A stretch of 64,000 bases of DNA from Piromyces finnis finn (Eukaryota; Fungi; Neocallimastigomycota): the NCBI GenBank assembly GCA_002104945.1, contig MCFH01000060.1:62001-126000 (forward strand), written 5' to 3'. The position numbers were made by a program, and so were the translations under genes. Positions within the stretch are counted from its first letter, which is position 1, and every line of letters starts with the position of its first letter. Under the pieces are notes generated by a model. The model was not told where the DNA came from and made no database searches. It worked only from the letters and a program-made list of their open reading frames with translations. Shown piece by piece: positions 9,954 to 64,000 of this stretch.

Positions 9954-10164
9954 AGATTTTGTTGATAAACCATATTTAAAAAAATATAAAATTTAAGGAC
10001 ATAGTATTAAATTTTAAAAGAAGTAATATGTAGGTATTTTAAATTTATTTTTAACAAAAATTAAATGATGTTTAAAAATTAAACACTCACGGCGGGACTC
10101 GAACCCGCAATCTTCAGATTAGAAGTCTGACGCCCTATCCAATTAGGCTACGCGAGCCACTTTC
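9954..10164. repeat. About 210-bp direct repeat (tRNA plus about 130 nt of 3' flank), duplicated at about 38010-38223
   Basis: Near-identical from aagattttgtt..ataaaccatattt through the tRNA to cactttc at both loci. Confidence 0.9.
10084..10157 (-). tRNA. tR(UCU): tRNA-Arg, anticodon TCT (copy 1)
   Basis: Reverse complement folds as a cloverleaf: acceptor GCTCGCG/CGTGAGT plus discriminator G, anticodon arm TCAGA-CTTCTAA-TCTGA, T arm GCGGG-TTCGAGT-CCCGC. A TTTTT terminator follows within about 10 nt. Confidence 0.97.
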
Positions 10165-10171
10165 AATTTAT

Positions 10172-10730
10172 TGATACGAAGAAAAATATTATCTTAATTC
10201 TATAAATGAATATAGAAAGTGATAATATTTGTATCTAAAAAATAATATTTAATAAATAAAATTTAAAGAAAATAAAAATAAATGATTTTTATACTTGTTC
10301 ATTTTCAAGTATTAGTTAGTTTTATAAAATATAGTTTATTTAATTATAAATTTTGATATTTAATAACTCTAGTATTATTAAATATATATTTTATTATTAA
10401 TACATCTCGGTATGTATGTGAATATAATTATAAGTATTATTTTAATAAATTTAATATTATTATCTAATTTTTCTGGATTATTAGGAACATTTTTAAAAAT
10501 AAGTAATTCTATCACTATTTATACAAAATTATTATTTTAAGATATAATTATAAACAAATATAAACTATTTAATTTAAAAAGAAATAAACAATTAAATAAA
10601 CAAAAAGTTTACATTTATAATTTTTAATTTAATAATTTTATACATGTTAAATATTTTAAATTTTTATCTATATTTTAATTATTATTATTATTATTATTAA
10701 TTTATAATTTATAAATTTAATTATTTATCA
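10172..10730 (+). mobile_element. Solo LTR, family A (A1), 14 nt upstream of tRNA copy 1
   Basis: TGATAC...TTTATCA termini, 4-bp TSD TTAT, and at least 6 related copies in the window. Confidence 0.8.
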
Positions 10731-12485
10731 TTATCAAAAGGCGATTTTTTATTAAAGAAAAGTGTGGTAAGCACACTAGTTATATTGTGAAGATATTAAC
10801 TGGATTTAAAACAAATTCAGATAATATCTATAATTAATTAAACATAATAATTATAATTAAATAATTTCAATAATTATTTTAAAACACTTTTAAAAGTCAC
10901 CTTTTAAATTTTGATTCAGTGAAAGGGTTATGATTTCAAAAAATTTAATATCAATACACTATAACCCTTAGCCAAAAATAAACAAATACGAAACTACGCA
11001 TAACTCGCCAAAAACGAGTGCTACGGCTGTAAGTACTACGGCTATGAAACTAGGTTTATTAGAAAGCTTAAGGGAAAAGCTATATTTTGGTATAATCGCG
11101 GTCCTTCTAACTGGTCATTTAAGGAAGATATGATCATTTGAAGATTTTAATAAGTAAATTAAAATTAATATGATATCAAGTATGGATCATAGACATTTCT
11201 TATGACTTGATGAAATTAAAAATATATCAATAGGAATTTTAGTTATATTAATTTAATTAATGATAACGATTGTTACTAAAAATAGAACTAGACCCATTTA
11301 GGTGTAACAGTTAACACCTATAAATTAAATAATCTTAATTATTATAAAATAGGTTAACGGCAAGTTTTATTAGAAATAATTTTGAAAATAATAATTATTT
11401 AATTATAACAAATATGTTATGGTAATATCAATTAATAATGATGAATTATTAATTGAATAGTTTTTATAATTACTAATTAGGATCAACTGTTTAAATGATT
11501 AATCATATGTTTATTTTATTTTATGTCATGACAAACAAACAAACAAACAAACAATCTTATTACTTATTTAATTATATTACTAATATATTACATGTAATAC
11601 TTTATTCTTATTAATATCAATTTAATAATCTGAACAAAGAATATAAAAGAGAATGAATTGAATTCGATTTTAATTCTTTGTAAAGATTATAGTTATAATC
11701 TTAATTATATAGTTACTTATAATATCATTTATATTATTATTATTAAATAAATAAAAAAGTTTATAAAAAGTTATTTTAAAGTAAATATAAATTTTTCATT
11801 TTTCATTTGGGAGTTTAAGGTGTTATTTTATAATTAAATTTAATTTCTTAAAAAACATTTTTACTATATAATTAATAACATTCTGACCTGGCCGCATAAC
11901 CAAACCCAAAAACTTAACATATATTAATTAATAAATATAATACGCTTTCCTATTGAAGGCGTAAAGCTAATAATATTTATATAAAGAAATTTAAATAATA
12001 TTTTTATTTTAGCAATAACTTAATATCAGCATATATTAAGTTATTAAAAATATTAAAATTTTTAAAGTTTTAGGTTTTATAGGAGTTTATAAATTTTATT
12101 AACTTTAGGTTAAAAAATTACTAACGCTAAAGCTTCGTAATTTTTGTCAATTTTTGTTCTTTTTATACATGAACAATTTTAATTATTACATTTTTTAATT
12201 TTAATTAATTATTATCTAATTATAAAATATTTAATTTTTATAAATTAATAATTAATATAATTATAAATAGTTAATAAATTTAAATTAAAATTTTTAATAA
12301 TAAAATTTTAATAATTTTAAAAAATTTAATAATTTCAAATATTAGAAATTTTATACTTTGAAATTTTTTAATAAAAATTTAAAAAATAAATTTTTTCAAA
12401 TTTTCAAATTTTCAAATTTAAAAAAAATTTTTAATTTTTTCCATGTGTCCAAATTTTTTAAATTTTTATATATGTTATTGTGACA
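10731..12485. mobile_element. Solo LTR, family D (D1), interrupted by A1 at its start and by B1
   Basis: Removing A1 and B1 reconstructs tatcaaaaggcg...ttattgtgaca, matching D3 (tgtcaaaaagcg..., 37388). Confidence 0.7.
10786..11919 (+). mobile_element. Solo LTR, family B (B1, 1134 bp)
   Basis: TGTGAAG...CTTAACA termini, 5-bp TSD TATAT, four copies in the window. Confidence 0.85.
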
Positions 12486-12492
12486 CAATTTT

Positions 12493-12988
12493 TGATAAAG
12501 AATGAAATTTATAAATAATGAATTAATAGAATAGCTGATTTTAAGATTATATAAACTTAATATAAATTAAAATAATAGTAAATAATCAAAATAATATAAA
12601 ATATAAATGTTTAATTAAATTTTAAAAATGTAAAATATAAACAACTTTTGTTTATAAACAAACTTAAATGTAATTATTTATTATAAATAGAAATAGAAAA
12701 TATTATTTTTAAAGATTGTTACTAATTAGCCAGGAAAATTAGAATATTTTAAAATTATAATAAATTAATATATTTTTTTTTATAATACATAGCGAGATGT
12801 ATTATACATTTATTTTAAATAAATAAACTAATATTATAAAACAAGATGTGTTTTTTAAAACTTTAAATTATATTTAATAATTATATAAACTTGTAGAATG
12901 AGCAAGTAAAAAATAAATCATTCAATTACACACAAATATACCACTTTCTAAGCTTATTTAGAATTAAGGTATATTTGAACGTGTGTCA
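12493..12988 (-). mobile_element. Solo LTR, family J (J1)
   Basis: TGATAAAG...GTGTGTCA termini with T-run flanks. The inverse copy J4 is at 46052-46543. Confidence 0.8.
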
Positions 12989-13043
12989 TTTTGATAAATA
13001 ATTAAATTTATAAATTATGAATTTATAATAATAATAATAATAA

Positions 13044-14178
13044 TGTGAAGATATTAACTGGATTTAAAACAAATTCAGATAATATCTATAATTAATTAAA
13101 CATAATAATTAGAATTAAAGAATTTCAATGATTATTTTAAAACACCTTTAAAAGTCACCTTTTAAATTTTGGTTCAGTGAAAGGGTTATGATTTCAAAAA
13201 ATTTAATATCAATACACTATAACCCTTAGCCAAAAATAAACAAATACGAAACTACGCATAACTCGCCAAAAACGAGTGCTACGGCTGTAAGTACTACGGC
13301 TATGAAACTAGGTTTATTAGAAAGCTTAAGGGAAAAGCTATATTTTGGTATAATCGCGGTCCTTCTAACTGGTCATTTAAGGAAGATATGATCATTTGAA
13401 GATTTTAATAAGTAAATTAAAATTAATATGATATCAAGTATGGATCATAGACATTTCTTATGACTTGACGAAAATTAAAAAGATATCAATAGAAATTCTA
13501 ATTATATTAATTTAATTAATGATAGTGACTGTTACTAAAAATAGAACTAGACCCATTTAGGTGTAACAGTTAACACCTATAAATTAAATAATCTTAATTA
13601 TTATAAAATAGGTTAACGGCAAGTTTTATTAGAAATAATTTTGAAAATAATAATTATTTAATTATAACAAATATGTTATGGTAATATCAATTAATAATGA
13701 TGAATTATTAATTGAATAGTTTTTATAATTACTAATTAGGATCAACTGTTTAAATGATTAATCATATGTTTATTTTATTTTATGTCATGACAAACAAACA
13801 AACAAACAAACAATCTTATTACTTATTTAATTATATTACTAATATATTACATGTAATACTTTATTCTTATTAATATCAATTTAATAATCTGAACAAAGAA
13901 TATAAAAGAGAATGAATTGAATTCGATTTTAATTCTTTGTAAAGATTATAGTTATAATCTTAATTATATAGTTACTTATAATATCATTTATATTATTATT
14001 ATTAAATAAATAAAAAAGTTTATAAAAAGTTATTTTAAAGTAAATATAAATTTTTCATTTTTCATTTGGGAGTTTAAGGTGTTATTTTATAATTAAATTT
14101 AATTTCTTAAAAAACATTTTTACTATATAATTAATAACATTCTGACCTGGCCGCATAACCAAACCCAAAAACTTAACA
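13044..14178 (+). mobile_element. Solo LTR B2 (chimera of B3 and B1), inserted 52 nt into an inverted A fragment (12992-13043)
   Basis: Same termini as B1. The 5' diagnostic sites match B3 and the 3' diagnostic sites match B1. Confidence 0.85.
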
Positions 14179-14751
14179 TATATTAATTAATAAATATAAT
14201 ACGCTTTCCTATTGAAGGCGTAAAGCTAATAATATTTATATAAAGAAATTTAAATAATATTTTTATTTTAGCAATAACTTAATATCAGCATATATTAAGT
14301 TATTAAAAATATTAAAATTTTTAAAGTTTTAGGTTTTATAGGAGTTTATAAATTTTATTAACTTTAGGTTAAAAAATTACTAACGCTAAAGCTTCGTAAT
14401 TTTTGTCAATTTTTGTTCTTTTTATACATGAACAATTTTAATTATTACATTTTTTAATTTTAATTAATTATTATCTAATTATAAAATATTTAATTTTTAT
14501 AAATTAATAATTAATATAATTATAAATAGTTAATAAATTTAAATTAAAATTTTTAATAATAAAATTTTAATAATTTTAAAAAATTTAATAATTTCAAATA
14601 TTAGAAATTTTATACTTTGAAATTTTTTAATAAAAATTTAAAAAATAAATTTTTTCAAATTTTCAAATTTTCAAATTTAAAAAAAATTTTTAATTTTTTC
14701 CATGTGTCCAAATTTTTTAAATTTTTATATATGTTATTGTGACACAATTTT

Positions 14752-15247
14752 TGATAAAGAATGAAATTTATAAATAATGAATTAATAGAATAGCTGATTT
14801 TAAGATTATATAAACTTAATATAAATTAAAATAATAGTAAATAATCAAAATAATATAAAATATAAATGTTTAATTAAATTTTAAAAATGTAAAATATAAA
14901 CAACTTTTGTTTATAAACAAACTTAAATGTAATTATTTATTATAAATAGAAATAGAAAATATTATTTTTAAAGATTGTTACTAATTAGCCAGGAAAATTA
15001 GAATATTTTAAAATTATAATAAATTAATATATTTTTTTTTATAATACATAGCGAGATGTATTATACATTTATTTTAAATAAATAAACTAATATTATAAAA
15101 CAAGATGTGTTTTTTAAAACTTTAAATTATATTTAATAATTATATAAACTTGTAGAATGAGCAAGTAAAAAATAAATCATTCAATTACACACAAATATAC
15201 CACTTTCTAAGCTTATTTAGAATTAAGGTATATTTGAACGTGTGTCA
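14752..15247 (-). mobile_element. Solo LTR J2 (duplicate of J1)
   Basis: Appears identical to 12493-12988 within the tandem duplication. Confidence 0.8.
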
Positions 15248-15302
15248 TTTTGATAAATAATTAAATTTATAAATTATGAATTTATAATAATAATAATAAT
15301 AA

Positions 15303-16302
15303 TGTGAAGATATTAACTGGATTTAAAACAAATTCAGATAATATCTATAATTAATTAAACATAATAATTAGAATTAAAGAATTTCAATGATTATTTTAAA
15401 ACACCTTTAAAAGTCACCTTTTAAATTTTGGTTCAGTGAAAGGGTTATGATTTCAAAAAATTTAATATCAATACACTATAACCCTTAGCCAAAAATAAAC
15501 AAATACGAAACTACGCATAACTCGCCAAAAACGAGTGCTACGGCTGTAAGTACTACGGCTATGAAACTAGGTTTATTAGAAAGCTTAAGGGAAAAGCTAT
15601 ATTTTGGTATAATCGCGGTCCTTCTAACTGGTCATTTAAGGAAGATATGATCATTTGAAGATTTTAATAAGTAAATTAAAATTAATATGATATCAAGTAT
15701 GGATCATAGACATTTCTTATGACTTGACGAAAATTAAAAAGATATCAATAGAAATTCTAATTATATTAATTTAATTAATGATAGTGACTGTTACTAAAAA
15801 TAGAACTAAACCATTTAGGTGTAACAGTTAACATTTATAAATTAAATAATTTTAATTATTATAAAATAGGTTAATGGATCAAGTGTTTAAATGATTAATC
15901 ATATGTTTATTTTATTTTATGTCATGACAAAACAAACAAACAAACAAACAAACAATCTTATTATATTATTAACATATTACATGTAATACTTTATTTTTAT
16001 CAATTTAATAATCTGAACAAAGAATATAAAATAGAATGAATTGAATTTGATTTTAATTCTTTGTAAAGATTATAGTTATAATCTTAATTATATAGTTATT
16101 AAATATATTATCATTTATATTATTATTAATAAATAAATAAAATTTTATAAAAAAAAAAGTTATTCTAAAGAATAAATATTAATTTTTCATTTGGAAGTTT
16201 AAAGGGTTATTTTATATTTAAATTTAATTTCTTAAAAACATATTTACTATATAATTGATAACATTCTGACCTGGCCGCATAACCAAATCCAAAAACTTAA
16301 CA
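15303..16302 (+). mobile_element. Solo LTR B3 (internally shorter variant)
   Basis: TGTGAAG...CTTAACA termini. Flanks are discordant (aataa / tctaa), so there is no TSD. Confidence 0.8.
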
Positions 16303-17035
16303 TCTAATCCTTTTATAAATTGTATATCAATTACTAGTGTTAATAATAATTAAACTATATTAGTATAAATTATTATGACGCAAATGTTACACATATATTA
16401 GAATAATTAATTACACAAGAAACGAAAAGATATAAAAATAGTGATAAAGAACAATATATAAAAGAAGAAAAAAAACTTTTCATATATAAATAATATTTGA
16501 TATTTTAGTTTTAAGTATAAGTTCTATTTTATTTTATTTTAGTTACAGTTTATTTTAGTTTAGTTTTAGGTCACTAATTACGTATTTAGTATTTATTTAT
16601 TATATTTAATTCAGTTTAAAATATTAATTATAAAAGAAAAGAATAATTATTGTTTATTTTTATTATTTCAAAAAGTTACATTTTATTATTAATAAGAATT
16701 TTATCAACATATTTTTATATTTATATTTTATATTTAAGTATTTATATTCATTAAACAATAACTTTCGATTCTACTAGTATTGAATGTTATTAATGTTATA
16801 ATTATAATCATAATAATAATAATAATAATTAAATAAAGAAACTTTAAACCAAAATCTATTTAATTATATTATTATAAAATTTATTATTTTTATTATTTGT
16901 TTTTATTATTTATTTTTATTATTATAAAATAGAAATAAATACAATATTATCTAATATATTATTCAACTCTCATTCCCTATTGCTAACGTTCACAATTATA
17001 TTTTATTTATGGTGTTTTTGAAATATATTGCATCA
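16303..17035. mobile_element. Probable truncated LTR, family S (single copy)
   Basis: Ends ATTGCATCA (a TGAT-type terminus when inverted), followed by a 3-nt spacer and L1. Left terminus not found. Confidence 0.4.
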
Positions 17036-17038
17036 TTT

Positions 17039-17847
17039 TGATAAAGAATGAAATTTATAAATATAAAATTATTATTATACCTGATTTTTAAGTTAACCCT
17101 AAAAGTAACTTAAAACAAGTTATAGTTTAATTAAGTACTTTACTAAAATTCTTAAATAAAATTAATCCTAAACACTGCATATATTTTGATTATTGAAAGA
17201 AAATAATAAACTTTAATTAATCGAGATCAAAATATATAACTTTTGTTAAATTAATTGTTAAATTAAATATTTAATAACTTCATTAGTAAATTACACTTTA
17301 AAAGTAAACAAATATAATAATTCATGTTATAAAATAATATAATTAAACACCTTTATTAAAACATTAAAAATAATTATTACTTTAATTAATTGTAAAATAA
17401 ACAACTTTTTATATTCTTTAACTTTTAATTATTTCTTTTATTGTTATTTCTAATTACTTTTATTACTTTTATTGTAAATAGTTATTAATTTTATTGTTTT
17501 AATGTAAATAGTTTAAATCTAAAAGAAAATATAAATACATGTAAATATTCTTATTTTAATCATTATTATTATTATTATTAGAAATATTATATAGTTAGAT
17601 TAATATTTTATAATTTTAATAATCACTTTTATACTTAAATAAATAAAATTTTAAATATTTAAATATTAGAAAAACAAGTGTTTCTAATAAAACAATTTAG
17701 TGTTTTAACAAAACAATTTTATTAATTTTTATAAAAACGAGTTTAAATCTTAATCAATATAACTTATATAGTTATACTCAAAGATATAATATAATAATCA
17801 CTTTTTGAAGTAAAATTCAAAATTAAGATTATTATCAAATTATATCA
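17039..17847 (-). mobile_element. Solo LTR, family L (L1, 809 bp)
   Basis: TGATAAAG...TTATATCA termini. It is the inverse of L2 (43375-46048) once I2 and Q are removed. Confidence 0.8.
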
Positions 17848-17849
17848 TT

Positions 17850-18401
17850 TGATACAATAGAAAAATATTATCTTAATTCTATAAATGAATATAGAAAGTG
17901 ATAATATTTGTATCTAAAATTTAATAAATAAAAATAAATAAGAAAATAAAAATAGAATAAATGATTTTTATACTTGTTCATTTGCAAGTATTAGTTAATG
18001 TTTAAAAATATAAAGTTTATTTAATTATAAAATTATATCATTATTTAATAACTCTAGTATTATTAAATAAAAAAAAATGTATGTTTTATATTCTAATTTT
18101 CAGGGATTATTAGTAACCCTTTTAAAAATAAGTTTTATTATAAAATAATTTTTGAATTTAATATTTAAAAATATATATCTAATTTTTCGCTCTGGATTAT
18201 AAGGAACATCTTTTAAAATAAAGTAATTCTATCACTATTTATACAAAATTATTATTTTAAAGTATAATTATAAACAAATATAAACTATTTAATTTAAAAA
18301 TAAGTAAACAATTAAATAAGCAAAAAGTTTACATTTATAATTTTTAATTTAATAATTTTATACAAGTTAATTATTTTAATTTTTAACTATCTGTGTTTTA
18401 A

Positions 18402-18444
<43 letters not shown>

Positions 18445-18476: not shown

Positions 18477-18478
18477 TT

Positions 18479-54281: not shown

Positions 54282-54332
<51 letters not shown>

Positions 54333-54585: not shown

Positions 54586-55550
54586 TAACGTACTCTTATT
54601 TGTATGTTAGGTAATTGTTATTGTAATGTTGAACACTGAAAGAATAGATTAGGATATCTATTCTATTACAATAACACAAGATTTTGAAAAAATAAAATAA
54701 AAAATTGTTTTATAAAATATCTTTTATTATAATAGAATTTTAATAATAACAATTACATCGATAAAATGATGAAAAATATCTTCTATTTATATTTTTCCTA
54801 AATACATTTATATTATATTATAACTATTTATTTCTTATATATTATTATTTAAAATCTACACTAAAATCTTAATTATTAATAAATATTTAAACTATAACTA
54901 TTTTTAGTAAAATACAATTGGCAATTCAAATTAAGTACTATTTAATTTGAATATGTGCCCATGTATTATTGATATATTAATCATTTATTATTTATCTATT
55001 TCTATAAAAAAACAATACTAAAACTAGGGATTTAAATTGAGAATATTAATTTGCTTGTTAAACATTAAAAATAAATTAATAATTTATTTTGTTTTAAACT
55101 TTAATTATTAATAAATAAATTATGTCTCATTTTCTTTTTCTGAATATAATTTGTGTAACTTAAACAATAATACTTGTGGCTTAAGTTACATTAAAGATAT
55201 CAAACAGAGGCGTTTGATATCTTTACAGTTATAATTATATACATTAATTATTATTATAGCTATTAATTTACTTTAATACTAACGCTAAAGTATTTAACGT
55301 TAGTTTTAACTATACTATTTAACTATATTAGTTTATTTTCTTTACCACTTGATTGGGTAAAGCAAATAAACTTCCTATTTAATTAATAACCATTAATATA
55401 TGGTTATACATATATCTGGCCAATAAATGGTGACCAGAATATATGGTTTCAATTGAAATATTTGTGGGCAAACTTATGGCCACAAATATTTCTTACAATG
55501 GTACGTATTATTTAATAATACCATAAATTTAATTATTTATTTTATTTCCA

Positions 55551-55560
55551 GGAGTCGAAC
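55551..55560 (-). promoter_or_regulatory. Pol III B-box-like motif GTTCGACTCC in the F LTR (second copy 62819-62828)
   Basis: Matches the B-box consensus GTTCRANNC(C) in an otherwise very AT-rich LTR. No A box seen. Confidence 0.45.
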
Positions 55561-56157
55561 AAAAGGGATTTATACAAAATAATATATTCTAATAAAAGAA
55601 TAAAAAAAATGATTATTTGTATATTTATTTATATTATAACTAATAATTATTTTTTAGTGTTATTAATTATTTTGCTTTTACTTTTATTATTTTTAACAAT
55701 TTATACACAAAGTATTTGAATATAAGAAAAAAAAGGATTAAACATAAAAAAAAATCTTATTTGTAACTTTCTCTTTTATTTTATTAATAAAAATAATTTT
55801 AAGTACATTTATATATTTAATATAAAAAAATATTTTTAGTTAAAACAGATATAAAAATTCTCAATAATTAATTATATTTATCAAAGAACTCTCTTTTCTT
55901 AATAAAAGTGAATTTTTGTTATTTTTATATAAAATTTTTATAATATTTTATTGGTTATTCAATAATAGATTAAATTATTATTTTTCTTAAATAATTGCTA
56001 ACCCTTAAAAATAACTATATAAATTTAATATTTTTAACTATATAATTTTATCACGTATCAAGATGCCTCCGCCGAAATTAAACTTCGTCTCCTGAAGTCT
56101 TATGGCAAGCATTGATATACGATAAAACAAAGGAAAATTTTAGTATTATCATTATTA

Positions 56158-56196
<39 letters not shown>

Positions 56197-56522
56197 TTAG
56201 ATTTCGAAATTTAAATTTTTTTTTTTTTTTTTTTTATATATATATACTAAATAAAAATTATTATTATAATTATTATTTATAATTATTATATTAAAATTAT
56301 TAATTATTATTTGATCAAATTTACAATTTGAATTTTGAAATTTTGAAATTTTGAAATTTCACAATTACTATTAATTGAAATGTATTTTTCCATCAACTGA
56401 AATTCTTTTAAATTATTTTTGTAAGTATTAAATTTTTATATATATTTGTAATATTGTTTATTTATTATGATTACTACTATCATTTATTAGTATTATTTAT
56501 TATTATTTATTATTTATTTATT

Positions 56523-56579
<57 letters not shown>

Positions 56580-56599
56580 TTATTTTATTTTATTTTATT

Positions 56600-56640
<41 letters not shown>

Positions 56641-56659
56641 TTCCTTAAAATTTCACTTT

Positions 56660-59600
56660 TCATTCTTCATTTACATATCCTACATAAGAGGTATAATACG
56701 GAATTATATTTTTAAGGTGAATATTGCGTTCGGCTATTTCCCCTGTCTGTGGGTCACATACCGTCACAGTGTTGAATTGTCGTTTAATAATTTTTAAAGG
56801 TCCAATAAAGTACGGGTCCAATTTTCGACGATTGAAGTGTTTTATCAAAACAAGGTCTCCGGGTTTAAATTCACTTCTTAATCTCCTTATTTGTTTTCTT
56901 CTATCCCTCCAAACCTCATTTGCAGTCTCAATATTGTTTATTGCTTCCTGAATCCAGTTATGGTGAGTAATAAATTTTCTAAGGTAGTATTCATCATCTG
57001 TTTCTTCAGGTCCTTTTTTATCTAAATTTATTGATAATTCAAATGGTTGCATATCTCTGCGACCATATAATAATTCAAAACTACTAAATTTTGTTACTTC
57101 ATTTTTAGCAGTTCGAAGTGCCCATAAAGCGCTAGGTAATATATCGTCCCATTCTTCATTATTTTTTCCTAACACTCTTAAATATTTTGAAATTTCTTTA
57201 TTTCTGTTTTCAATTTGTCCATTTGAAGCAGGATGGTAAGTTGTAATATATTGTACAAACACATCATTAAGATCTAGGAATGCTTTAGTTCTATCTGAAC
57301 TAAATTGTGGTCCATTATCTGTAACCAAGACTTCTGGAATACCATGCCTACAAAACACTTCCGTTAAAAATCTTATCACATCTTCAGATTCAGTTTTTAT
57401 TAATGGGGAAGCCTCTACCCATTTAGTCATATAGTCCACTAAAGCAATAATATACCTTGAGCCTCTTTTAGTGGTATTTAAAGGTCCTATTAAGTCCAAA
57501 CTAACACGAGTAAAAGGAAGTTCTGGTGGAGTAGCAATATTTTCAGGATATTTATTTAATGGTTGCACTTTACATGTTTGACATTTATGGCAACCTTTGA
57601 TGAATAATTTTATATCTTTAGACATTCCTTTCCAATAATAATCTCTACATAACCTATGATATGTTTTATAAATACCTTCATGTCCTATTGCATGAGCTTG
57701 AGCTATTAATCGGATTTTCTCATTATTATCAGTAATTATTTTCCTAAAATTATCTCCATGTTTATAATATTCTATTCCATCAATTAAAATAATTCTTTTT
57801 TTTATAAAGTCATTGAAAAAATTATTTAACATTACTCTTTGTTCATTACTATCACCTACACGAATATCTCCATTTACGTCTTTATTTTCAACTATCACGT
57901 TTGCTATTTCTTTACTAATATCAACATTTTTACTAACATTTATAATATCGTCATCAAATCTAACTTTCTTTTTTATTTTACTTTTTGTAGTAACTATTTT
58001 ATTTTTATTTCCAACTTCATTAGAATAATCATTAGCATTATTAAATTCAGAAATATTAATTTTACTATTTTTTTTTTCATCATTATTAATAATTACAGGG
58101 GTTTGAGAACTCTCCATTCTAGATAAAGCGTCTGCTAGAACATTCTTCTTCCCCTCCTCAAATTGAACAATCACCCTTAATGCACTAAATTCAGTAATCC
58201 ATTTTATGTGGCGGCTTGTTGTTGGTTCCTTATTTTTGAAAATGCTGACTAAAGGTTTGTGATCTGTAATTAATAAAGTATCAAAATTATTACCTGTAAT
58301 AAATGATTTAAATTTCATAACACAATAATAGGCGGCAGTTCCCTCAAGTTCAGTAATACTATAATGTCTTTCAGTATCAGATAGGGTACGACTCTGGTAG
58401 TATAATGGTTTCTCAAATTTATCTTTGTCCAATTGTATTAAAACACCACCGATACCACTTCTAGAAGCATCCGTTCTTATAATAAAGGGTTTGCTAAAAT
58501 CAGGCGGAGAAAGAATTGGAGCCGAAGCTAACTTTAATTTTAAATTTTCAAAAGAATTAGAACAAGAATCGGACCATTCGTAAGGAATACCTATTTTAGT
58601 GAGCTCGTATAGTGGTTGAGCTACTTGTGCAAAGTTAGAAATAAACTTACGGTAATACCCAACTGCACCTAAAAAGGAACGAAGTTGTTTAATGTTTTTA
58701 GGTGGAATCCAATTTAATATAACATTTATTTTCGAGTCCAAAGGTTTTAAACCATCAACAGAAAGTAGATGACCTAATAATTCAACTTCTTGCTTAAAGA
58801 AATTACATTTATCAATATTTATTTTCAAACCATTATCTTTTAAAATTTGAAATACAGAAGCTAAGTCAGTGACATGTTGTTCTAGAGAATTAGAAAAAAT
58901 AACTAAATCATCAATATAAACGAACACAGACTTTCCAATTAAATCAAAAAATATTCTGTTCATTTCCCTTTGGAAAGTCGCAGGTGCATTACACAAACCG
59001 AAGGGCATAACAACAAAATTATAATTACCAAAAATAGTGGTAAAACAAGTTTTATCTTTATCATCAGGATGCATTGGAATCTGATGGTATCCTGAGAACA
59101 AATCAATAGTACTTAAAACTGCGGCATTATTACCTACATAATACAGAATGTCGTCTATAAGGGGGAGAGCATAGGAGACTTTAATTGTAAAATTATTCAA
59201 CATTCGATAATCTACACACATTCTTACTTGGTTATTCTTTTTCGGAACCAAAACTACAGGTGAAGACCAAGGTGAATGGGATGGTTCAATAAGACCATTC
59301 TCTATGAGCTTAGTAAGTTCTACCTTTAGAGCATCAGCTTTAACTTTCGGTAATCTATAGGCTCTCTGTTTAATCGGTTTAGTATTTGGTAGCAAGTCAA
59401 TATGATGAGGAAGTAATTTAGTCTTACCTAAATCATCTGTTTTAATGGCTATTACCTCCATAAAGTTGTTAAAGACATCCTTCATCTTGTTTTGAATATC
59501 CAAAGGTAATACAGTAATAATATTATTTATTATGTTTCTTTTAATTTCTAAATTATTCAATTTTATATCTAAACCTTGATTATTAGTAGTTGATTCACTA

Positions 59601-61369
59601 GTGACTGTAATTAATGCTGGTAATATCCCATAAGTTGAAAGGTAATAATCATCAAAATTAGTGTGCTTAACATTATCAGTATTATTCTGTTCTTTATCAT
59701 CATTAACTTCAGTTTGATTATTGTCATTTCCATTATTGTATATATTAATATCGTAGCACAAATTGGTAAGTTTAATTGGATTATTACTTAAATCCATAAA
59801 ATATAAAGTATCATCCACTAAGTTAATAACAAATCGATTTCTTTTTAAAGAATCAACCCCAATTAGTATATCAAAAATGTCATCTTTGTCTACTAGTCTA
59901 AAATATTCAGAAAAGGTAAGATCACCGATTTTTATACTTAATTCATAAATACTAGAATTTGAATTATTATTAGAGAAGGCTTGTAGAAAAGTTTCAGTAA
60001 TTGTACCAATACAAGGTTTGTTGATTTGAAATTTCTTTAATGCTGATTTAGTAATTAAATTAACACTAGAGCAGGTATCCAAGAAAATTTCAGCATTATT
60101 ATTTTCAACTTCACCAGGTACTTTAATAATTTTATTTCTACTAAAAAGTGACATAACATTTGATGCTGGGTTTTTAAATGAAGTTAACTTTAAAGATTTT
60201 ATAAATTCACTTCTAAATTTAGGGAACCAGTCTAGCAAATTTACTAACTTAGTTTTGACTTCCGTTGATACAATATCCCGAATCAGATCTTCAATGTACA
60301 TGTTTTCCAACTTTTCAAGTATTTTAATATGCTTTTCATTTTTAGTCAATGATTCATCTGCTTTATTATTATCTTCATTAATTTCACTAACTAGATTTGA
60401 AAGTTCGTTTATTCTATCTAACTTATTTTTCTTCTTTGCATTTGTTATATTAGGTTGATTAATAAATGACAAATCAAGAAACTGCAATTTTTCTGTTTTC
60501 CTTTTCTTATCAGATTGAGCGTCATCATCAGTAGTGTCATTATAGGAATTTTTCCTCTTAGGATTGGTTGGTTTTGTTTTATAACTATTATCAAATGTAG
60601 TAATATTATCTTTCCTCAATTTATTTCCAATTTCATCATCAATATAGTTAGAGTTATTTTCACTAATTTTATCAGCATGTATTCTTTTTCCTGATTTGAC
60701 AGTAGGATTATTTTTCTTTGTTGGTTCACCTTGCTCATCACTACTGCTCTTATCCTTTTCATTATTAAGTTGATCTTCATGATTATCAGTATTATTTACT
60801 TTAGGGTTATTAATATTTACTGGTTCATTCATCTCCATATCTATCTCGCTTGTAAGTGGGACTACTTCGTCGTCATCATTTATATCAGTTTTATTGTGAT
60901 TCATTGCCGCGGTAGATATTGGTACAGGATTATCTTTTAATTTACCCGGTGGTACTTTATATGGGGTAAATGTTTTCTTATCATTATTCTTATTCTTTCT
61001 AGTAGCAACAGCAACAATTTCAGGGTACATATCACTAATTCCATTCTGGTTTGATACATTCATAGAATAATCAGTATTCATCCCATTATTATTTTCAGCT
61101 TTATACTTTTCATTGTTGGAATAATTAAAACTAGTTCCGTAAGAAGTAGTATTCTTATTATTTAAATTAATCTCTTTTTGAGCATAATTAGTATTATTTT
61201 CATATTGATTATTAGAATACTGTATATTATCATTATTATAAAGTGGATTTTTATTATTTGAATAATTGAATAAATTTATATTTTTATTATCTTTATTTTC
61301 ATTATATTTTCCATTAATGACGGTTTGATTATTGGGAGTTATCCTTCTCCCTAATTGGAGTTTAAATGC
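56660..61369 (-). CDS. pol: Pol of F (PR, RT, RNase H, IN with GPY/F module, no chromodomain), probably made as a Gag-Pol fusion
   Basis: The frame stays open upstream of the ATG at 61081 to 61369 and overlaps the gag end in the -1 frame. Motifs: YIDD, TDAS, HHCC, DLIGP/TDNG/ENRN. The protease motif reads DTC. Confidence 0.92.
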   Translation of the reverse strand, partial: AFKLQLGRRITPNNQTVINGKYNENKDNKNINLFNYSNNKNPLYNNDNIQYSNNQYENNTNYAQKEINLNNKNTTSYGTSFNYSNNEKYKAENNNGMNTDYSMNVSNQNGISDMYPEIVAVATRKNKNNDKKTFTPYKVPPGKLKDNPVPISTAAMNHNKTDINDDDEVVPLTSEIDMEMNEPVNINNPKVNNTDNHEDQLNNEKDKSSSDEQGEPTKKNNPTVKSGKRIHADKISENNSNYIDDEIGNKLRKDNITTFDNSYKTKPTNPKRKNSYNDTTDDDAQSDKKRKTEKLQFLDLSFINQPNITNAKKKNKLDRINELSNLVSEINEDNNKADESLTKNEKHIKILEKLENMYIEDLIRDIVSTEVKTKLVNLLDWFPKFRSEFIKSLKLTSFKNPASNVMSLFSRNKIIKVPGEVENNNAEIFLDTCSSVNLITKSALKKFQINKPCIGTITETFLQAFSNNNSNSSIYELSIKIGDLTFSEYFRLVDKDDIFDILIGVDSLKRNRFVINLVDDTLYFMDLSNNPIKLTNLCYDINIYNNGNDNNQTEVNDDKEQNNTDNVKHTNFDDYYLSTYGILPALITVTSESTTNNQGLDIKLNNLEIKRNIINNIITVLPLDIQNKMKDVFNNFMEVIAIKTDDLGKTKLLPHHIDLLPNTKPIKQRAYRLPKVKADALKVELTKLIENGLIEPSHSPWSSPVVLVPKKNNQVRMCVDYRMLNNFTIKVSYALPLIDDILYYVGNNAAVLSTIDLFSGYHQIPMHPDDKDKTCFTTIFGNYNFVVMPFGLCNAPATFQREMNRIFFDLIGKSVFVYIDDLVIFSNSLEQHVTDLASVFQILKDNGLKINIDKCNFFKQEVELLGHLLSVDGLKPLDSKINVILNWIPPKNIKQLRSFLGAVGYYRKFISNFAQVAQPLYELTKIGIPYEWSDSCSNSFENLKLKLASAPILSPPDFSKPFIIRTDASRSGIGGVLIQLDKDKFEKPLYYQSRTLSDTERHYSITELEGTAAYYCVMKFKSFITGNNFDTLLITDHKPLVSIFKNKEPTTSRHIKWITEFSALRVIVQFEEGKKNVLADALSRMESSQTPVIINNDEKKNSKINISEFNNANDYSNEVGNKNKIVTTKSKIKKKVRFDDDIINVSKNVDISKEIANVIVENKDVNGDIRVGDSNEQRVMLNNFFNDFIKKRIILIDGIEYYKHGDNFRKIITDNNEKIRLIAQAHAIGHEGIYKTYHRLCRDYYWKGMSKDIKLFIKGCHKCQTCKVQPLNKYPENIATPPELPFTRVSLDLIGPLNTTKRGSRYIIALVDYMTKWVEASPLIKTESEDVIRFLTEVFCRHGIPEVLVTDNGPQFSSDRTKAFLDLNDVFVQYITTYHPASNGQIENRNKEISKYLRVLGKNNEEWDDILPSALWALRTAKNEVTKFSSFELLYGRRDMQPFELSINLDKKGPEETDDEYYLRKFITHHNWIQEAINNIETANEVWRDRRKQIRRLRSEFKPGDLVLIKHFNRRKLDPYFIGPLKIIKRQFNTVTVCDPQTGEIAERNIHLKNIIPYYTSYVGYVNEE
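61334..61366 (-). promoter_or_regulatory. Putative -1 programmed ribosomal frameshift signal
   Basis: U UUA AAC heptamer (61360-61366), an 8-nt spacer, then a GGGAG-AAGGATAA-CTCCC hairpin (61334-61351). Confidence 0.75.
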
Positions 61370-62598
61370 TTAACATTGTTAATTCCATCTTTATTATTTA
61401 CTTCTTTATTATTAGTACCGTTTTGAAACATCCTAATCTGTTCCATAGAATATGGACAGACACTGGCTTTGTGACCATGCTGTTTACATCTATAGCACTG
61501 AATGGCCCTAAGCTTATTACCATAAGTATTGTTTTGTAAGCCAGGGTTAGAATTATACCCTCCACTAATAGTATTATTTCTATTATAATTAATATTATTA
61601 TATCCTTGGTGGTTATCTGCATTAATATTTCCATTTTCATCTTTATTAAATTCAATATTTCCATTATTAGAGTTATTATTATTGAAATTGCGAAAATTAC
61701 TAAATTTGGTTTGATTAAAATTATTAGCGTTTTTAATATATCCTATTTTGTTAATATTTCCGAATCGATTATTGTTTCTAGGATTGCCACTATTATTGAG
61801 GTTAGGACTATTTTCATAAGTGTTGTAATTACTATACCCTAAGTGATTATTATAATTATTATGATTATTGTAAAAATTTCTAGGTTGATCGTACATATCC
61901 ATATTCTTATAATTTCTTCCATAATTCATATTAGGATAATCATCTGGGTAGCTATGATTAGTAAGGGTACTATATATTGGATGATTCAAAAGAGAGGAAT
62001 ATCCATAGTTTTGGGTTAACATGTTTATGTTAGCAGTATTAGCATTATTATTAGTGTTAATATAACTATTATTCATTGTTTTCTTCTCGGCCTTTTCAGC
62101 TCTTTCAGCCACTTTAAAAGCTTCTGTTAATGTTTCACATTCTGAAATAATAACCTGAGAGTGTGGATATACTCTCGTTTTAATAGCATTTAAATAATCT
62201 TCTACAGATATCAACCTCATATAATCATGATCTAAATGATGGTATAATTTTAAATATCTATAGTTGAAATTTTTTATTGTTTCATTATCCCTAATTTTCA
62301 GAAGTTTTAGGTTAGAACATTTTTCATTAGGAGTTATCTCTAAGTACTCTTCTATGGCTACTTGGATTTCTTTGAATTTTGGGTAATGCATTTCGTTGTT
62401 TCTCCTTTTTACTAAAGAATTTAATACTTCTTTAATATCACAGTCAACAGCCTCCTTAGCCCATATAAAAATTCTTCTAGGCTCAGTTATGTCATAGATT
62501 TCCATTATCCGAGAAAATTCTTCCATCCAACTATCCACATCCTTTCCATATTCATTTAACTGTGGGATAGCCCTTTGTAATTTTGATGCATCCATCAT
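61351..62598 (-). CDS. gag: Gag of F (415 aa) with CCHC zinc knuckle
   Basis: CYRCKQHGHKASVC knuckle. Lies between the 5' LTR/PBS and pol. Confidence 0.9.
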   Translation of the reverse strand: MMDASKLQRAIPQLNEYGKDVDSWMEEFSRIMEIYDITEPRRIFIWAKEAVDCDIKEVLNSLVKRRNNEMHYPKFKEIQVAIEEYLEITPNEKCSNLKLLKIRDNETIKNFNYRYLKLYHHLDHDYMRLISVEDYLNAIKTRVYPHSQVIISECETLTEAFKVAERAEKAEKKTMNNSYINTNNNANTANINMLTQNYGYSSLLNHPIYSTLTNHSYPDDYPNMNYGRNYKNMDMYDQPRNFYNNHNNYNNHLGYSNYNTYENSPNLNNSGNPRNNNRFGNINKIGYIKNANNFNQTKFSNFRNFNNNNSNNGNIEFNKDENGNINADNHQGYNNINYNRNNTISGGYNSNPGLQNNTYGNKLRAIQCYRCKQHGHKASVCPYSMEQIRMFQNGTNNKEVNNKDGINNVKHLNSN

Positions 62599-62742
62599 TT
62601 TTTTTTTTTATTTATTTATTATTTATATATTTATATTTCCTTTTTTTTTTTTTTTTTTTTTTTTTTATATATATATATATATAAGTTCTTCTAAATATTA
62701 TTATTATCTTTTATTGTTTTTCATATTATTTTGTTTTGCTCG

Positions 62743-62758
62743 TCCGGATTCTCCACCA
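62743..62758 (-). promoter_or_regulatory. tRNA primer-binding site of F, probably tRNA-Ala
   Basis: TGGTGGAGAATCCGGA lies 8 nt after the 5' LTR. It is complementary to a tRNA ending ...ATTCTCC-A-CCA, where U70 and A73 fit Ala identity. A 12-bp inverted repeat (62760-62771 / 62787-62798) spans the LTR junction. Confidence 0.7.
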
Positions 62759-63333
62759 AAAATTTATGGTACGTATTATTTAATAATACCATAAATTTAA
62801 TTATTTATTTTATTTCCAGGAGTCGAACAAAAGGGATTTATACAAAATAATATATTCTAATAAAAGAATAAAAAAAATGATTATTTGTATATTTATTTAT
62901 ATTATAACTAATAATTATTTTTTAGTGTTATTAATTATTTTGCTTTTACTTTTATTATTTTTAACAATTTATACACAAAGTATTTGAATATAAGAAAAAA
63001 AAAGGATTAAACATAAAAAAAAATCTTATTTGTAACTTTCTCTTTTATTTTATTAATAAAAATAATTTTAAGTACATTTATATATTTAATATAAAAAAAT
63101 ATTTTTAGTTAAAACAGATATAAAAATTCTCAATAATTAATTATATTTATCAAAGAACTCTCTTTTCTTAATAAAAGTGAATTTTTGTTATTTTTATATA
63201 AAATTTTTATAATATTTTATTGGTTATTCAATAATAGATTAAATTATTATTTTTCTTAAATAATTGCTAACCCTTAAAAATAACTATATAAATTTAATAT
63301 TTTTAACTATATAATTTTATCACGTATCAACAA

Positions 63334-64000
63334 TGCTACGGTTCAAATAAGATATCACAAAACACTTGAATAGTTATAAAAATAAAAATTTATTTAATTT
63401 TAATTTTTATTCATTTAATTTATTTTTGATTTTTCAATTTTTAGAATTTTTCTCAAAAATCCTCGTACTTTTTCCAACTATCCATTATTTGAAATTTAAT
63501 GGTTTTGGATAGCTAAGGATTTAAATTGATTTCATTCATAATATATGGATCATTCACTGTAACATATATTAATTAAATCCTTAATATATATTATGAATAA
63601 TCTCTTAATATTTGAATAGAAAAATTTTTAATTTATAATTAATAAAATTTTAATTTATGATATGTGTAACATTTTTGCATATCATATATTATATATTTAA
63701 TTATGACATATAATAAAATTATATTATTCAATTAATTATGCCCTTTTTTAGACATAAATAATAATTTTTCTGTCGAGGTATCTTCTGTTTTGTGTGTAAC
63801 AGTTGCCTCTTTTAGTAAAAATTATAATTAAATTCTATGTCATAATTTCAAATTATAAAATATTATACAATAAAGTTAATTAATAAAATAAACCTTAAAT
63901 AATAATAAAATACCTATAACTATTTTAATAATAAAATTTTGTAAAATTTATAAGTATAAAATATTATAAGTAATTATACTAATACTAATAATAAAGGTCT
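63334..64000. mobile_element. Possible further LTR (starts TGCTACGGTTCAAATA), running off the window
   Basis: TG start directly after the F TSD. It shares GTTCAAATA near the terminus with family J. The other end is not visible. Confidence 0.35.

Follow-up and report, generated by a model that had tools for sequence, protein, structure and literature searches.

Polar stacks of Ty3/gypsy LTRs and two insertion registers upstream of tRNA genes in the anaerobic gut fungus Piromyces finnis

The window, a stretch of 64,000 nucleotides from Piromyces finnis (contig MCFH01000060.1, positions 62,001 to 126,000), contains between positions 10158 and 64000 three polar stacks of LTRs and full-length Ty3/gypsy elements. 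This region of the anaerobic gut fungus was very probably built by serial Pol III-directed integration of Ty3/gypsy LTR retrotransposons. Two insertion registers, one about 14 and the other about 66 bases upstream and both anchored on the tRNA gene, were found across the genome, and repeated hits at these two exact spots would push old copies outward into ordered stacks.

Architecture of the three stacks

Positions 10158-64000 were an unbroken run of LTRs of the TG...CA type together with four full-length Ty3/gypsy elements (Table 1). The original prediction had described this region as one array of more than 50 kb of abutting LTRs. The short spacers were confirmed (about 22 between stack members, 0-8 nt), and their median of 3 nt was below the 5 nt that repeated insertion at one and the same base should leave. 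About half of the 53.8-kb array, however, is not LTR but internal sequence of the full-length elements E1 (with E2 nested inside), E3 and E4, and the array is made up of three stacks, each with a tRNA-Arg gene of its own. Stacks 1 and 2 begin at the two tRNA-Arg genes of the window, upstream of no. 1 being toward higher coordinates, while stack 3 is anchored outside it at tRNA-Arg no. 3 (window-equivalent position 70382, 6.4 kb past the window end). All junctions that had been listed were found in place: F4-ttt-A stub (12989-12991), unclassified repeat-ttt-P-ttt-A-tt-O-(0)-H (17036-19282), N-tt-A (21723-21724), M-ttt-A-ttttt-A (40907-41679), P-aaa-F4-aaaa-A (46048-46547) and H-a-E4 (55498).

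Table 1. Features of the three stacks, in window coordinates
Feature	Position	Strand	Remarks
tRNA-Arg(UCU) no. 1, stack 1 anchor	10084-10157	-	ARAGORN; Rfam RF00005, 69.9 bits; leader 10158-10171, 14 nt
Solo LTR A1, class I	10172-10730	+	TGATACGAAG...TTATTTATCA; rank 1, 14 nt from tRNA; TTAT on each flank
LTR D, class I	10731-12485	+	proximal terminus mutated; split by F2 into 55-nt stub 10731-10785 (D positions 3-55) and 11920-12485 (D positions 50-523)
Solo LTR F2, class II	10786-11919	+	TGTGAAGAT...ACTTAACA; 1134 bp; inside D; TSD TATAT
Solo LTR F4, class I	12493-12988	+
Inverted A-type LTR stub	12992-13043		about 53 nt, after F4
Second copy of 2258-bp block (F2, D rest, F4, A stub)	13044-15302	+
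Older third F2	15303-16302	+
Unclassified repeat	16303-17035	.	end ...GCATCA; no match in LTR library
Solo LTR P, class I	17039-17847	+	TGATAAAGAATG...AAATTATATCA
Solo LTR A2, A family	17851-18476	+	87-90% identity to A1
Solo LTR O1, class I	18479-19281	+	TGTAAGAATT...AATTATTACA
LTR H stub, class I	19282-19334	-	53 nt, tRNA-facing side of K1; H positions 434-486, 98%
Solo LTR K1, class II	19335-20555	+
A-type LTR A3	20556-21110	+	first 25-40 nt missing
Solo LTR N, class I	21114-21722	+	TGTGGTACG...GGTTGTACCA
A-type LTR A4	21725-36004	+	split by V2 (TSD GTGAT) into 52-nt stub 21725-21776 and 35462-36004
LTR V2, class II	21777-35461	+	TGTCACGAATATT...CCGCAACA; split by E1 into 21777-22382 and 35438-35461
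E1, full-length, chromovirus clade	22383-35437	-	nested in V2; TSD CTAAC
E2, full-length chromovirus	25942-32797	+	nested in E1; TSD TAAGG
Stack 1 distal end	36008-37930	+	O-like LTR 36008-36898, F4 36899-37385, intact D 37388-37930
tRNA-Arg(UCU) no. 2, stack 2 anchor	38143-38216	-	leader 38217-38234, 18 nt
O-type LTR O3	38235-40285	-	split by V1a (TSD TTTAA) into 49-nt stub 38235-38283 and 39559-40285
Solo LTR V1a, class II	38284-39558	-	TGTCACGAATAC...AAAACTTTTACA; 67 nt from tRNA-Arg no. 2
Solo LTR M, class I	40289-40906	+	...AATCCGTTATCA
Solo LTR A5	40910-41674	+	expanded (ATT)n tract
A-type LTR A6	41680-43370	+	split by V1b (TSD AGTGA) into 50-nt stub 41680-41729 and 42767-43370
Solo LTR V1b, class II	41730-42766	+
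Convergence of stacks 2 and 3	43371-43374	.	stubs left-facing before, right-facing after
LTR P2, class I	43375-46049	-	outermost in stack 3; interrupted by K2 and Q; 52-57-nt stub on right side, 45997-46049
Solo LTR K2, class II	44128-45333	-	TSD TAGGG
Solo LTR Q, class II	45347-45996	+	TGTCAAAATCTC...GATTCTTGACA; TSD ACTTA
Solo LTR F4b, class I	46050-46543	-
A-type LTR A7	46548-48688	-	split by F2d into 46548-47509 (long (ATT)n tract) and 51-nt right-side stub 48638-48688
Solo LTR F2d, class II	47510-48637	-
LTR H2, class I	48697-55497	+	TGTAAAAGG...TTTCTTACA; split by E3 into 48697-48926 and 55228-55497
E3, full-length, chromovirus clade	48927-55227	-	nested in H2; TSD GTTAT
E4, full-length, class I	55499-63329	-	rank 2 of stack 3; end ...TATCACGTATCA
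E5 left LTR, class I	63334-64000	-	rank 1 of stack 3; runs off window

The polarity of each stack follows from the stubs that class II insertions leave of the LTRs they split. All eight independent class II insertions in the window had such a stub, 49-57 nt long, on the side facing the tRNA gene of their own stack. Distal members with a stub must therefore once have adjoined a tRNA gene. The direction of the stubs switched only once in the window, which places the convergence of stacks 2 and 3 at that point. Target-site duplications (TSDs) of 5 bp were present at seven of the eight insertions, the exception being K1 with its unlike flanks. Most stack members were bounded by TSDs of their own and belonged to differing families. 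The expected overlap of TSDs with neighbouring LTR ends was also observed, for example at E4, where the flanking ACAA takes in the final three bases of H.

Two tRNA-anchored registers

The tRNA sample comprised the 63 candidates with the best scores among about 2900, mostly Arg, Thr and Gly genes, and terminus statistics were calculated for 48 non-redundant tRNA units from throughout the genome. Class I, with at least 11 LTR families and at least three deep pol clades, ended 11-18 nt upstream of the tRNA (mode 14). Class II, comprising the five LTR families F2, V1, V2, K and Q, ended at -65 to -68, and its copies interrupted the proximal class I LTR, leaving 44-57 nt as a stub on the tRNA side. 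The genome-wide test that had been proposed gave the predicted sharp peaks of LTR termini, at -11 to -18 and -65 to -68 from tRNA 5' ends. Of 35 proximal repeat termini detected automatically, 30 were 11-18 nt from the tRNA (binomial p about 2e-27 for a uniform distribution over 6-99 nt), and 16 class II termini lay at 65-68 nt (p about 1e-18). Repeat coverage was 0 at -5 and 61% at -17; it climbed again from 71% at -61 to 86% at -69, reaching 94% by -81.

Individual families were found at the same distances elsewhere. Repeat termini in ...CA lay 11-17 nt upstream of tRNA-Arg, Ala, Gly, Thr, Ser and Glu genes on many contigs (77 oriented tRNA upstreams). The A1 terminus recurred at -14 of other tRNAs, the E4 end at -14 of a tRNA-Ala and an N-type terminus at -16 of a tRNA-Gly (locus L023). 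For class II, the F2 terminus was found at -66/-67 of four other tRNAs and that of Q at -68 of a tRNA-Met. In stack 1, F2 would lie about 65 nt from tRNA-Arg no. 1 with A1 removed. Among the tRNA-proximal starts originally proposed, those of A1 (14 nt) and the O3 stub (18 nt) stand, while the 11 nt of D1 applies only to a would-be start, its terminus being mutated.

An ordinary retrotransposon nest or insertion into heterochromatin, with tRNA genes nearby by chance or moved to LTR ends, would fit the nesting of E1, E2 and E3, which bears no relation to tRNAs. It has next to no likelihood, as the genome-wide sample contradicts it: the two peaks at exact distances span eight tRNA species on many contigs (p of the order of 1e-27 and 1e-18). 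Downstream of the tRNAs, repeat coverage was 20-40% and no comparable LTR boundary was present in the sample; no LTR lay within 10 kb of tRNA-Arg no. 1 on its 3' side. Moreover, the TSDs surround LTRs and not tRNAs.

The class II register might instead be set by the end of the resident LTR, about 50 bp inside it, for example by a positioned nucleosome or an LTR-bound factor. In this genome, class II copies do nearly all lie within a class I LTR and at 44-57 nt from the LTR end, even where no tRNA adjoins them any longer. This reading is nevertheless highly improbable. The stub length decreased with increasing class I offset (slope -0.92, r = -0.98), stubs of 44-54 nt offsetting the class I position, while the distance of class II to the tRNA stayed constant at 65-67 nt (SD 0.7); the register is therefore measured from the tRNA. 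The two TG...CA ends of an LTR are equivalent, yet only the end facing the tRNA was ever left as a stub. In addition, on a gut-fungal metagenome contig (L044), the start of a class II relative (pol 64% identical) and a tRNA-Val downstream of it were 65 nt apart, and no class I terminus could be recognised in the interval.

Order of insertion and later rearrangement

The predicted chronology, with the youngest members nearest the tRNA, holds broadly. The two members nearest tRNA-Arg no. 3 were both full-length, with LTR identities of 100% for E5 (rank 1) and 99.8% for E4 (rank 2). E5 is about 7.0 kb long and ends 14 nt from the tRNA; its LTR pair was identical over the 668 nt available (668/668), window positions 63333-64000 corresponding to L038 5128-5795 at 100%. 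Full-length O-family elements at -16 (L015) and -14 (L026) likewise had LTR pairs that were 100% identical. The nearest retroelement ORF lay 0.7-1.5 kb from the tRNA in 14 of 18 ORF-bearing loci (p about 6e-8). The terminal-branch lengths of A-family LTRs showed no clean rise with rank. An insertion at -66 goes behind the current proximal LTR and not ahead of it, and the chronology is further blurred by nested chromoviruses, unequal-crossover duplication and tRNA duplication.

The young chromoviruses E1, E2 and E3 lay far from any tRNA and off both registers. E1, itself interrupted by E2, had identical LTRs (600/600) and belongs to the same family as E3 (97.9%). The LTRs of E2 were 99.86% identical and a chromodomain was present (PF00385). 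E3 had a 1547-aa gag-pol ORF, LTRs 99.8% identical and a Chromo match of 25.3 bits.

Not all of stack 1 consists of separate insertions, as had been assumed, since 10786-15302 is a 2258-bp tandem duplication (13044-15302 against 10786-13043, 99.2% identical). The arrangement at 13044-16302 is the expected product of unequal crossover between two F2 copies. K1 lies between the H stub and what remains of an A LTR, and its flanks did not match (AAACC and AACTC), suggesting that two K insertions recombined here. Both the tandem duplication and the unlike K1 flanks show that recombination alters the insertion record. The tRNA-Arg gene with its 3' flank, D and F4 was present three times, once inverted: tRNA-Arg no. 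2 and its 3' flank were 98.6% identical to no. 1, and the F4-D pair and tRNA recurred inverted beside tRNA-Arg no. 3 (L038 6289-6980; D 100%, F4 98%). Several small contigs carried near-identical tRNA loci. All this would also be in keeping with an array that segmental duplication and recombination had largely shaped, in a region rich in repeats and perhaps similar to a centromere, so that the order of elements would hold little insertion history. Such an origin is very unlikely, because most members have their own TSDs and are of different families, the fixed registers repeat across tRNA species and contigs that are unrelated, the stub polarity is uniform in each stack, and duplication accounts for only parts of stack 1.

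Serial Pol III-directed integration would thus proceed as follows. A new class I insertion would part the previous occupant from the tRNA, leaving about one TSD between them, and a class II insertion would split the current proximal LTR, with a stub of about 50 nt staying on the tRNA side. Repetition would give polar stacks with the youngest members beside the tRNA, most members later being reduced to solo LTRs. The chromodomain-bearing relatives E1-E3 would afterwards insert into the repeat-rich stack at any position, and blocks of it would be duplicated or deleted by unequal recombination.

Integrases and comparison with Ty3

All elements were Ty3/gypsy by Pfam, and the best solved relative was Ty3 Gag-Pol. 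The class II elements with sampled pol (F2 and V1 only) were monophyletic (SH-aLRT 100). In a structural model (pLDDT 83), the class II integrase C-terminus is predicted to form an SH3-like domain and then a chromodomain fold, and the best PDB match of the model was 7q5b, the Ty3 integrase in the TFIIIB-tRNA gene complex. The TFIIIB complex at the tRNA promoter may tether the integrases: those of class I would dock on its downstream side, like Ty3, and those of class II on its upstream side.

No paper on such tRNA-targeted stacks was found for the Neocallimastigomycota. The growth of the stacks from the tRNA side, which had been likened to spacer addition in CRISPR arrays, resembles it by analogy only. 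Ty3 contacts Brf1 through a vestigial chromodomain (PMC8632968). In contrast, the O-family integrase stops 11 residues past the SH3 domain and lacks this vestigial chromodomain, so that, to judge from the sequence, the interface must differ from that of Ty3 in some class I lineages at least. The class I register (-11 to -18, mode 14) is the position of Ty3 and is expected to coincide with the Pol III start site or lie slightly upstream of it, and the second spot, about 66 bases upstream, is new for LTR elements.

Organisation of the LTR stacks in the window

The window is part of contig C190 in an assembly of 56.5 Mb in 232 contigs. It is very AT-rich (G+C content, 11-33%), and every long ORF in it is a Ty3/gypsy gag-pol gene. 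A map of the region 10158-64000 was built from a self-comparison and a library of reference copies drawn from the window. The region consisted, without gaps, of LTRs with TG...CA ends and four full-length elements, and the spacers between neighbouring elements were 0-8 nt long (median, 3 nt; about 22 junctions). All LTR junctions listed in the original prediction were recovered in the map. The prediction had also described an LTR array of more than 50 kb; the series is indeed continuous, but about half of its 53.8 kb is internal sequence of full-length elements, and three stacks were found instead of a single array.

Coordinates of tRNA genes, stacks and other features (positions in the window unless a fetched locus, L, is named)
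Feature	Coordinates	Strand	Remark
tRNA-Arg(UCU) no. 1	10084-10157	minus	ARAGORN and Rfam
tRNA-Arg(UCU) no. 2	38143-38216	minus	ARAGORN and Rfam
Stack 1	10158-38009		tRNA-proximal side left
Stack 2	38217-43370		tRNA-proximal side left
Stack 3	43375 onward		tRNA-proximal side right; passes the window end to tRNA-Arg no. 3 at window-equivalent 70382 (L038)
tRNA-Arg with 3' flank, three copies on the contig	36899-38223; L038 6001-6980; 9953-10164
Tandem duplication	10786-15302
311-aa ORF	6942-7877	minus	weak zinc-finger match
(ATT)n microsatellites in A-type LTRs	41403-41641; 46581-47080		grown to 240-500 bp in some copies
Ser-Met tRNA pair	L019 6770-6934
Tandem LTR-internal-LTR-internal array	L044 6348-17536		two units 100% identical over 5.5 kb

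The LTR copy A1 lies 14 nt from tRNA-Arg no. 1, and the remaining piece of copy O3 lies 18 nt from tRNA-Arg no. 2. The D copy, which has a mutated end, would have begun 11 nt from tRNA-Arg no. 1 prior to the arrival of A1. No LTR was found at 1-10083, 3' of this gene, and the stack begins exactly at the tRNA. These 10 kb contain simple repeats and the 311-aa ORF. Microsatellite growth was seen within some A-type LTRs (table).

Two registers of LTR termini upstream of tRNA genes

For a test across the genome, 7.5 kb around each of 40 other tRNA genes was sampled, which with neighbouring genes gave 71 unique tRNA genes in 48 non-redundant transcription units. Nearly every unit had a repeat terminus (...CA) 11-17 nt upstream of the tRNA 5' end, and these termini belonged to many LTR families. 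Repeat coverage upstream of the tRNAs was 0 at -5, rose to 61% at -17, stayed flat until -60, and reached 86% at -69 and 94% at -81. Downstream of the tRNAs the coverage was 20-40%, and no TG/CA boundary was found there.

Termini were also called automatically as 20-mers ending in CA that recur elsewhere with a different continuation. Applied to the 48 non-redundant units, this test called an inner terminus in 35, of which 30 had it at 11-18 nt (mode, 14 nt; p about 2e-27); in 16 units it called an outer terminus, at 65-68 nt (p about 2e-18). Where no call was made (13 units), mutated ends can in several cases be seen by eye, e.g. ...CCGTTATCG. The plot of LTR termini against tRNA 5' ends proposed in the original prediction thus has its peaks, in the sampled units, at 11-18 and 65-68 nt. 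The inner insertions are confined to a few bp near the expected Pol III start site, as judged from the mature 5' end, and nearly all sampled tRNA genes are occupied by LTRs. The targeted genes encode tRNA-Arg, -Ala, -Gly, -Thr, -Ser, -Glu and -Met, and their leaders are unrelated. This is as expected if the target is the transcription complex and not a DNA sequence. Of the other Pol III genes, U6 and 5S were located in the genome.

The two registers are used by different LTR families. At least 11 families end at the inner register (class I): A, F4/P, H, O, D, M, N, the family of the full-length element E4, two ...TTCCTTAACA families and one ending in ...CTTGTATCA. The families F2, V1, V2, K and Q (class II) end at the outer register, which is about 52 bp farther upstream. 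Their LTRs interrupt the class I LTR adjoining the tRNA, of which a short stub remains on the tRNA side. This stub is 44-54 nt long and is shorter where the class I offset is larger (slope, -0.92; r = -0.98), while the distance from the class II LTR to the tRNA is constant at 65-67 nt. Since the stub compensates for the class I offset, the outer register is measured from the tRNA and not from the LTR.

Metagenomes from rumen and gut, as well as a gene set from Orpinomyces, contained relatives of class II pol with 62-86% identity. On a 17.5-kb gut-fungal metagenome contig (L044) a tRNA-Val is preceded by the LTR of such a relative, which begins 65 nt upstream, and the interval contains no class I terminus. 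The outer register therefore also exists outside this genome and does not require a resident LTR. The same contig carries a tandem array of LTRs and internal sequences (table). A tRNA was missing from two of the three contigs with class II relatives that were checked. Relatives of the class I family O in other assemblies were limited to contigs that lack flanks and do not exceed 5.9 kb.

Many of the tRNA genes form dicistronic pairs with spacers of 5-10 nt, namely Glu-Arg (L003, L005, L007), Gly-Thr (L022-L034) and Ser-Met (L019), and in these pairs only the first gene is an LTR target. A Ser-Met pair is known in fission yeast too. The tRNA-Glu 'introns' of 880-890 nt reported by ARAGORN in L008-L010 were rejected as artefacts of a pseudo-tRNA with a 10-nt deletion in the D-arm. 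In these three near-identical small contigs, the pseudo-tRNA-Glu lies upstream of a tRNA-Arg and has an H LTR 11 nt upstream. The tRNA genes are bunched on a few repeat-rich contigs: among the best 63 of about 2900 candidates, 12 hits fell on C176 and 5 each on C190, C184 and C156. This bunching recalls the clusters of tRNA genes and retrotransposons at S. japonicus centromeres.

Displacement and order within the stacks

In the window, the stub lay on the tRNA-facing side in all eight independent class II insertions. It is on the left in the composites D/F2, inverted A/F2, H/K1, A4/V2, O3/V1a and A6/V1b, and on the right in Q/P2 and F2d/A7; K2 in P2 is to be added to these. Clean 5-bp TSDs were present at seven of the eight insertions (TATAT, GTGAT, TTTAA, AGTGA, TAGGG, ACTTA). 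The stub lengths in the window, 49-57 nt, equal 66 less the offset that is usual for the host family, and each composite was therefore formed while its host LTR adjoined a tRNA. Composites with stubs are now found up to 11 kb from a tRNA. The stubs are thus direct evidence of outward displacement, and the same pattern was found again in other loci of the genome. Stubs of about 50 nt are a built-in mark of past tRNA adjacency, from which the history of transposition, recombination and tRNA gene turnover can be read in the sequence alone.

The original prediction had taken the stacks as a chronological record, and this is broadly borne out, with caveats. It is supported by the geometry at tRNA-Arg no. 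1, where F2 lies about 65 nt from the gene once A1 is removed, which gives the order D, then F2, then A1. It is further supported by the age order at tRNA-Arg no. 3, which matches the rank counted outward from the tRNA. Rank 1 is the full-length element E5, whose LTRs are identical across the available 668 nt; rank 2 is E4, inserted at the same site with only ACAA between the two and with LTRs that are 99.8% identical; the members from rank 3 outward are solo LTRs. In L015 and L026, too, full-length elements with LTR pairs of 100% identity were found near tRNAs, at 16 and 14 nt, respectively. In 14 of the 18 loci that hold retroelement ORFs the nearest one is 0.7-1.5 kb from the tRNA, i.e. behind one LTR (p about 6e-8).

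Nesting, duplications and the flanks of K1 count against a clean record. Young chromoviruses are nested far from tRNAs, with E1 in V2, E2 in E1 and E3 in H2, and the two flanks of K1 are unlike each other. A 2258-bp block consisting of F2, the rest of D, F4 and an A stub is repeated, which is the outcome expected of unequal crossover between two F2 copies. This tandem duplication spans 10786-15302 and is not a set of separate insertions. Because tRNA-Arg occurs with its flank in three copies (table), tRNA genes must also have been duplicated within the repeat region. Two of the tRNA-Arg copies share D (100%) and F4 (98%) behind the gene, in inverted orientation.

Divergence against rank, the proposed means of dating stack members, gave only a weak trend in the A-family LTRs. 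A first dating tree of this family was swamped by spurious AT-rich alignments and was discarded. In a tree of 18 copies the terminal branches were, with rising rank, 0.028, 0.011, 0.065 and 0.053 in stack 1 and 0.007 and 0.029 in stack 2.

If a spacer equals the TSD plus the difference in offset, 5 nt are predicted at equal registers, against the observed median of 3 nt. Spacers of 3 nt might result from 4-bp duplications in some lineages, from slippage in A/T runs or from TSDs that extend over the CA of the older LTR. Leaders of 14 nt often start with CA(A), e.g. in L019, L022, L025, L026 and L029, as expected if the occupant's TSD duplicated the final bases of an older LTR that had been located 2-3 nt closer. 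Such copying may explain spacers below 5 nt.

Integrases, proposed tethering and comparison with known systems

The Pfam domains Gag, protease, RT, RNase H and integrase were found in Ty3/gypsy order in E3, E4 and the elements of L015, L026, L033, L024, L020 and L038, and the best PDB relative was Ty3 Gag-Pol (7q5b, E 3e-137). LTR pairs were 97.8-100% identical with TG...CA ends. TSDs of 5 bp were seen for F2, V1, V2, K2, Q, E1, E2 and E3, and 4-bp flanks (ACAA, TTAT) for E4, E5 and A1. About 16 of 19 full-length copies are oriented divergently from the tRNA, and solo V1 LTRs are biased likewise. In a pol tree of 16 elements, in which class II was represented by F2 and V1 only, these two formed one clade (SH-aLRT 100). 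Class I pol fell into three deep clades, one with E4 and the TTCCTTAACA families, one with D and H, and one with O; E2 and E3, which are not at tRNAs, together form one clade that is sister to O. In class II (L024, L025, L034, L020) gag and pol are two overlapping ORFs, which implies a frameshift; the class I families O, D and H (L015, L026, L033) have a single long gag-pol ORF. The sequence past the 5' LTR of V1 (ATAATCTTTACCGCG...) is unlike the usual tRNA primer-binding site.

The Pfam chromodomain PF00385 was detected in E2 (27.7 bits) and E3 (25.3 bits), the latter being 97.9% identical to E1 at the DNA level; none was detected in class I or class II elements. The tail of the class II (V1) integrase was modelled as an SH3 domain followed by a chromodomain fold (pLDDT 83). 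The model matched the MPP8 chromodomain with a TM score of 0.83, and its best PDB match was the Ty3 integrase in the TFIIIB complex (7q5b). By our reading of its sequence, the usual methyl-lysine cage positions appear to be changed. The O-family integrase stops 11 residues past the SH3 domain and therefore has no room for a vestigial chromodomain of the Ty3 type.

Safe-haven integration has its textbook example in the targeting of Pol III genes. For LTR elements, this targeting is understood in Ty3 and Ty1, and it is on record for DGLT-A and Tj1 as well. The finding is real as a case of Pol III-directed LTR integration in a new lineage, unusually dense and by many lineages at once, and the second register has not previously been described for LTR elements. 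This genome adds an independent and very rich targeting system, in which many lineages share one register and integrase-bearing elements use a second, exact one. Both target classes, and chromodomain-bearing relatives that are not targeted, are available for comparison within one genome, which allows a direct test of which parts of the integrase recognise which face of the Pol III initiation complex. Much of the repeat structure in genomes of anaerobic gut fungi is explained by tRNA-directed stacking, which probably also accounts for the fragmented assembly of these genomes. A literature search retrieved no paper tying retrotransposons of Neocallimastigomycota or Piromyces to tRNA genes; a survey of tRNA-targeting elements spans amoebae and yeasts (PMC5006619).

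The inner register matches those of Ty3, DGLT-A (PMC5006619) and Tj1 (PMC4600332). Ty3 insertions are limited to a few bp at the Pol III start site, and about 12-17 nt separate the LTR from the mature end of the tRNA (PMC8632968, PMC5006619). TFIIIB holds the Ty3 integrase immediately upstream of this site, and the vestigial chromodomain after the integrase CTD contacts Brf1 (PMC8632968). Class I, at 11-18 nt, belongs to the same element class, and the class II tail would, if the model is right, resemble that of Ty3 in its CTD and chromodomain-like fold. By position, class I integrases may be tethered by TFIIIB in the same way. The tether would then run at least partly via another interface, since the O-family integrase, in contrast to that of Ty3, cannot hold such a chromodomain. 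Further differences are that yeast has one family, whereas at least 11 LTR families and at least three deep pol clades share the register here, that LTRs occupy almost every tRNA gene sampled and form stacks up to tens of kb long, that the divergent orientation bias is strong, and that the fungal lineage is distant.

DGLT-A of dictyostelids, an LTR element without a canonical chromodomain, inserts 13-33 bp (mean, 15 bp) upstream of tRNA genes and coexists with chromodomain-bearing Skipper elements that cluster elsewhere (PMC5006619). Similarly, the tRNA-targeting elements described here lack a Pfam-detectable chromodomain and the chromoviruses E1-E3 nest elsewhere. The host of DGLT-A is amoebozoan, however, its origin is independent, no LTR register at -66 is described for it, and the insertion window is tighter here. 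Tj1 of Schizosaccharomyces japonicus, like class I a fungal Ty3/gypsy element upstream of tRNAs, inserts 5-11 bp from mature tRNA ends and, jointly with clusters of tRNA genes, forms (centromeric) regions rich in retrotransposons (PMC4600332). It differs in its single register, its ascomycete host and an orientation bias opposite to the divergent one found here, and ordered stacks are not described for it.

The nearest analogue of the outer register is that of the dictyostelid non-LTR elements TRE5-A and Pp_NLTR-B, a discrete position about 50 bp upstream of tRNA genes and thus farther out than that of Ty3 (PMC5006619, PMC5391098). These elements use target-primed reverse transcription, whereas class II has LTRs, an integrase and 5-bp TSDs and ends at -65 to -68; the resemblance is in position only. 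The outer register lies beyond the expected position of TFIIIB, and class II could plausibly dock on that face of the complex which points upstream. A joint reading, which we hold tentatively and rate as just short of evenly balanced, is that this early-diverging fungal lineage has two mechanistically distinct Pol III-anchored registers: a Ty3-like start site used by several deep clades, at least one of them without a chromodomain, and, about 52 bp farther upstream, a mirror-image site of a single clade with a degenerate chromodomain, maybe docking on the upstream face of TFIIIB. Together they would fill almost every tRNA gene and build self-ordering archives tens of kb long, perhaps seeding heterochromatin or centromere-like regions as Tj1 does. 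If this is true, class II would be the first LTR-element counterpart of the TRE5 register.

The stacks also resemble leader-end acquisition in CRISPR arrays, in that units join at one fixed end and their order reflects time. They have neither a dedicated acquisition machinery nor a record function, however, their units are whole transposons, and the record is edited by nesting, the second register and recombination. The likeness is one of analogy and not of kinship.
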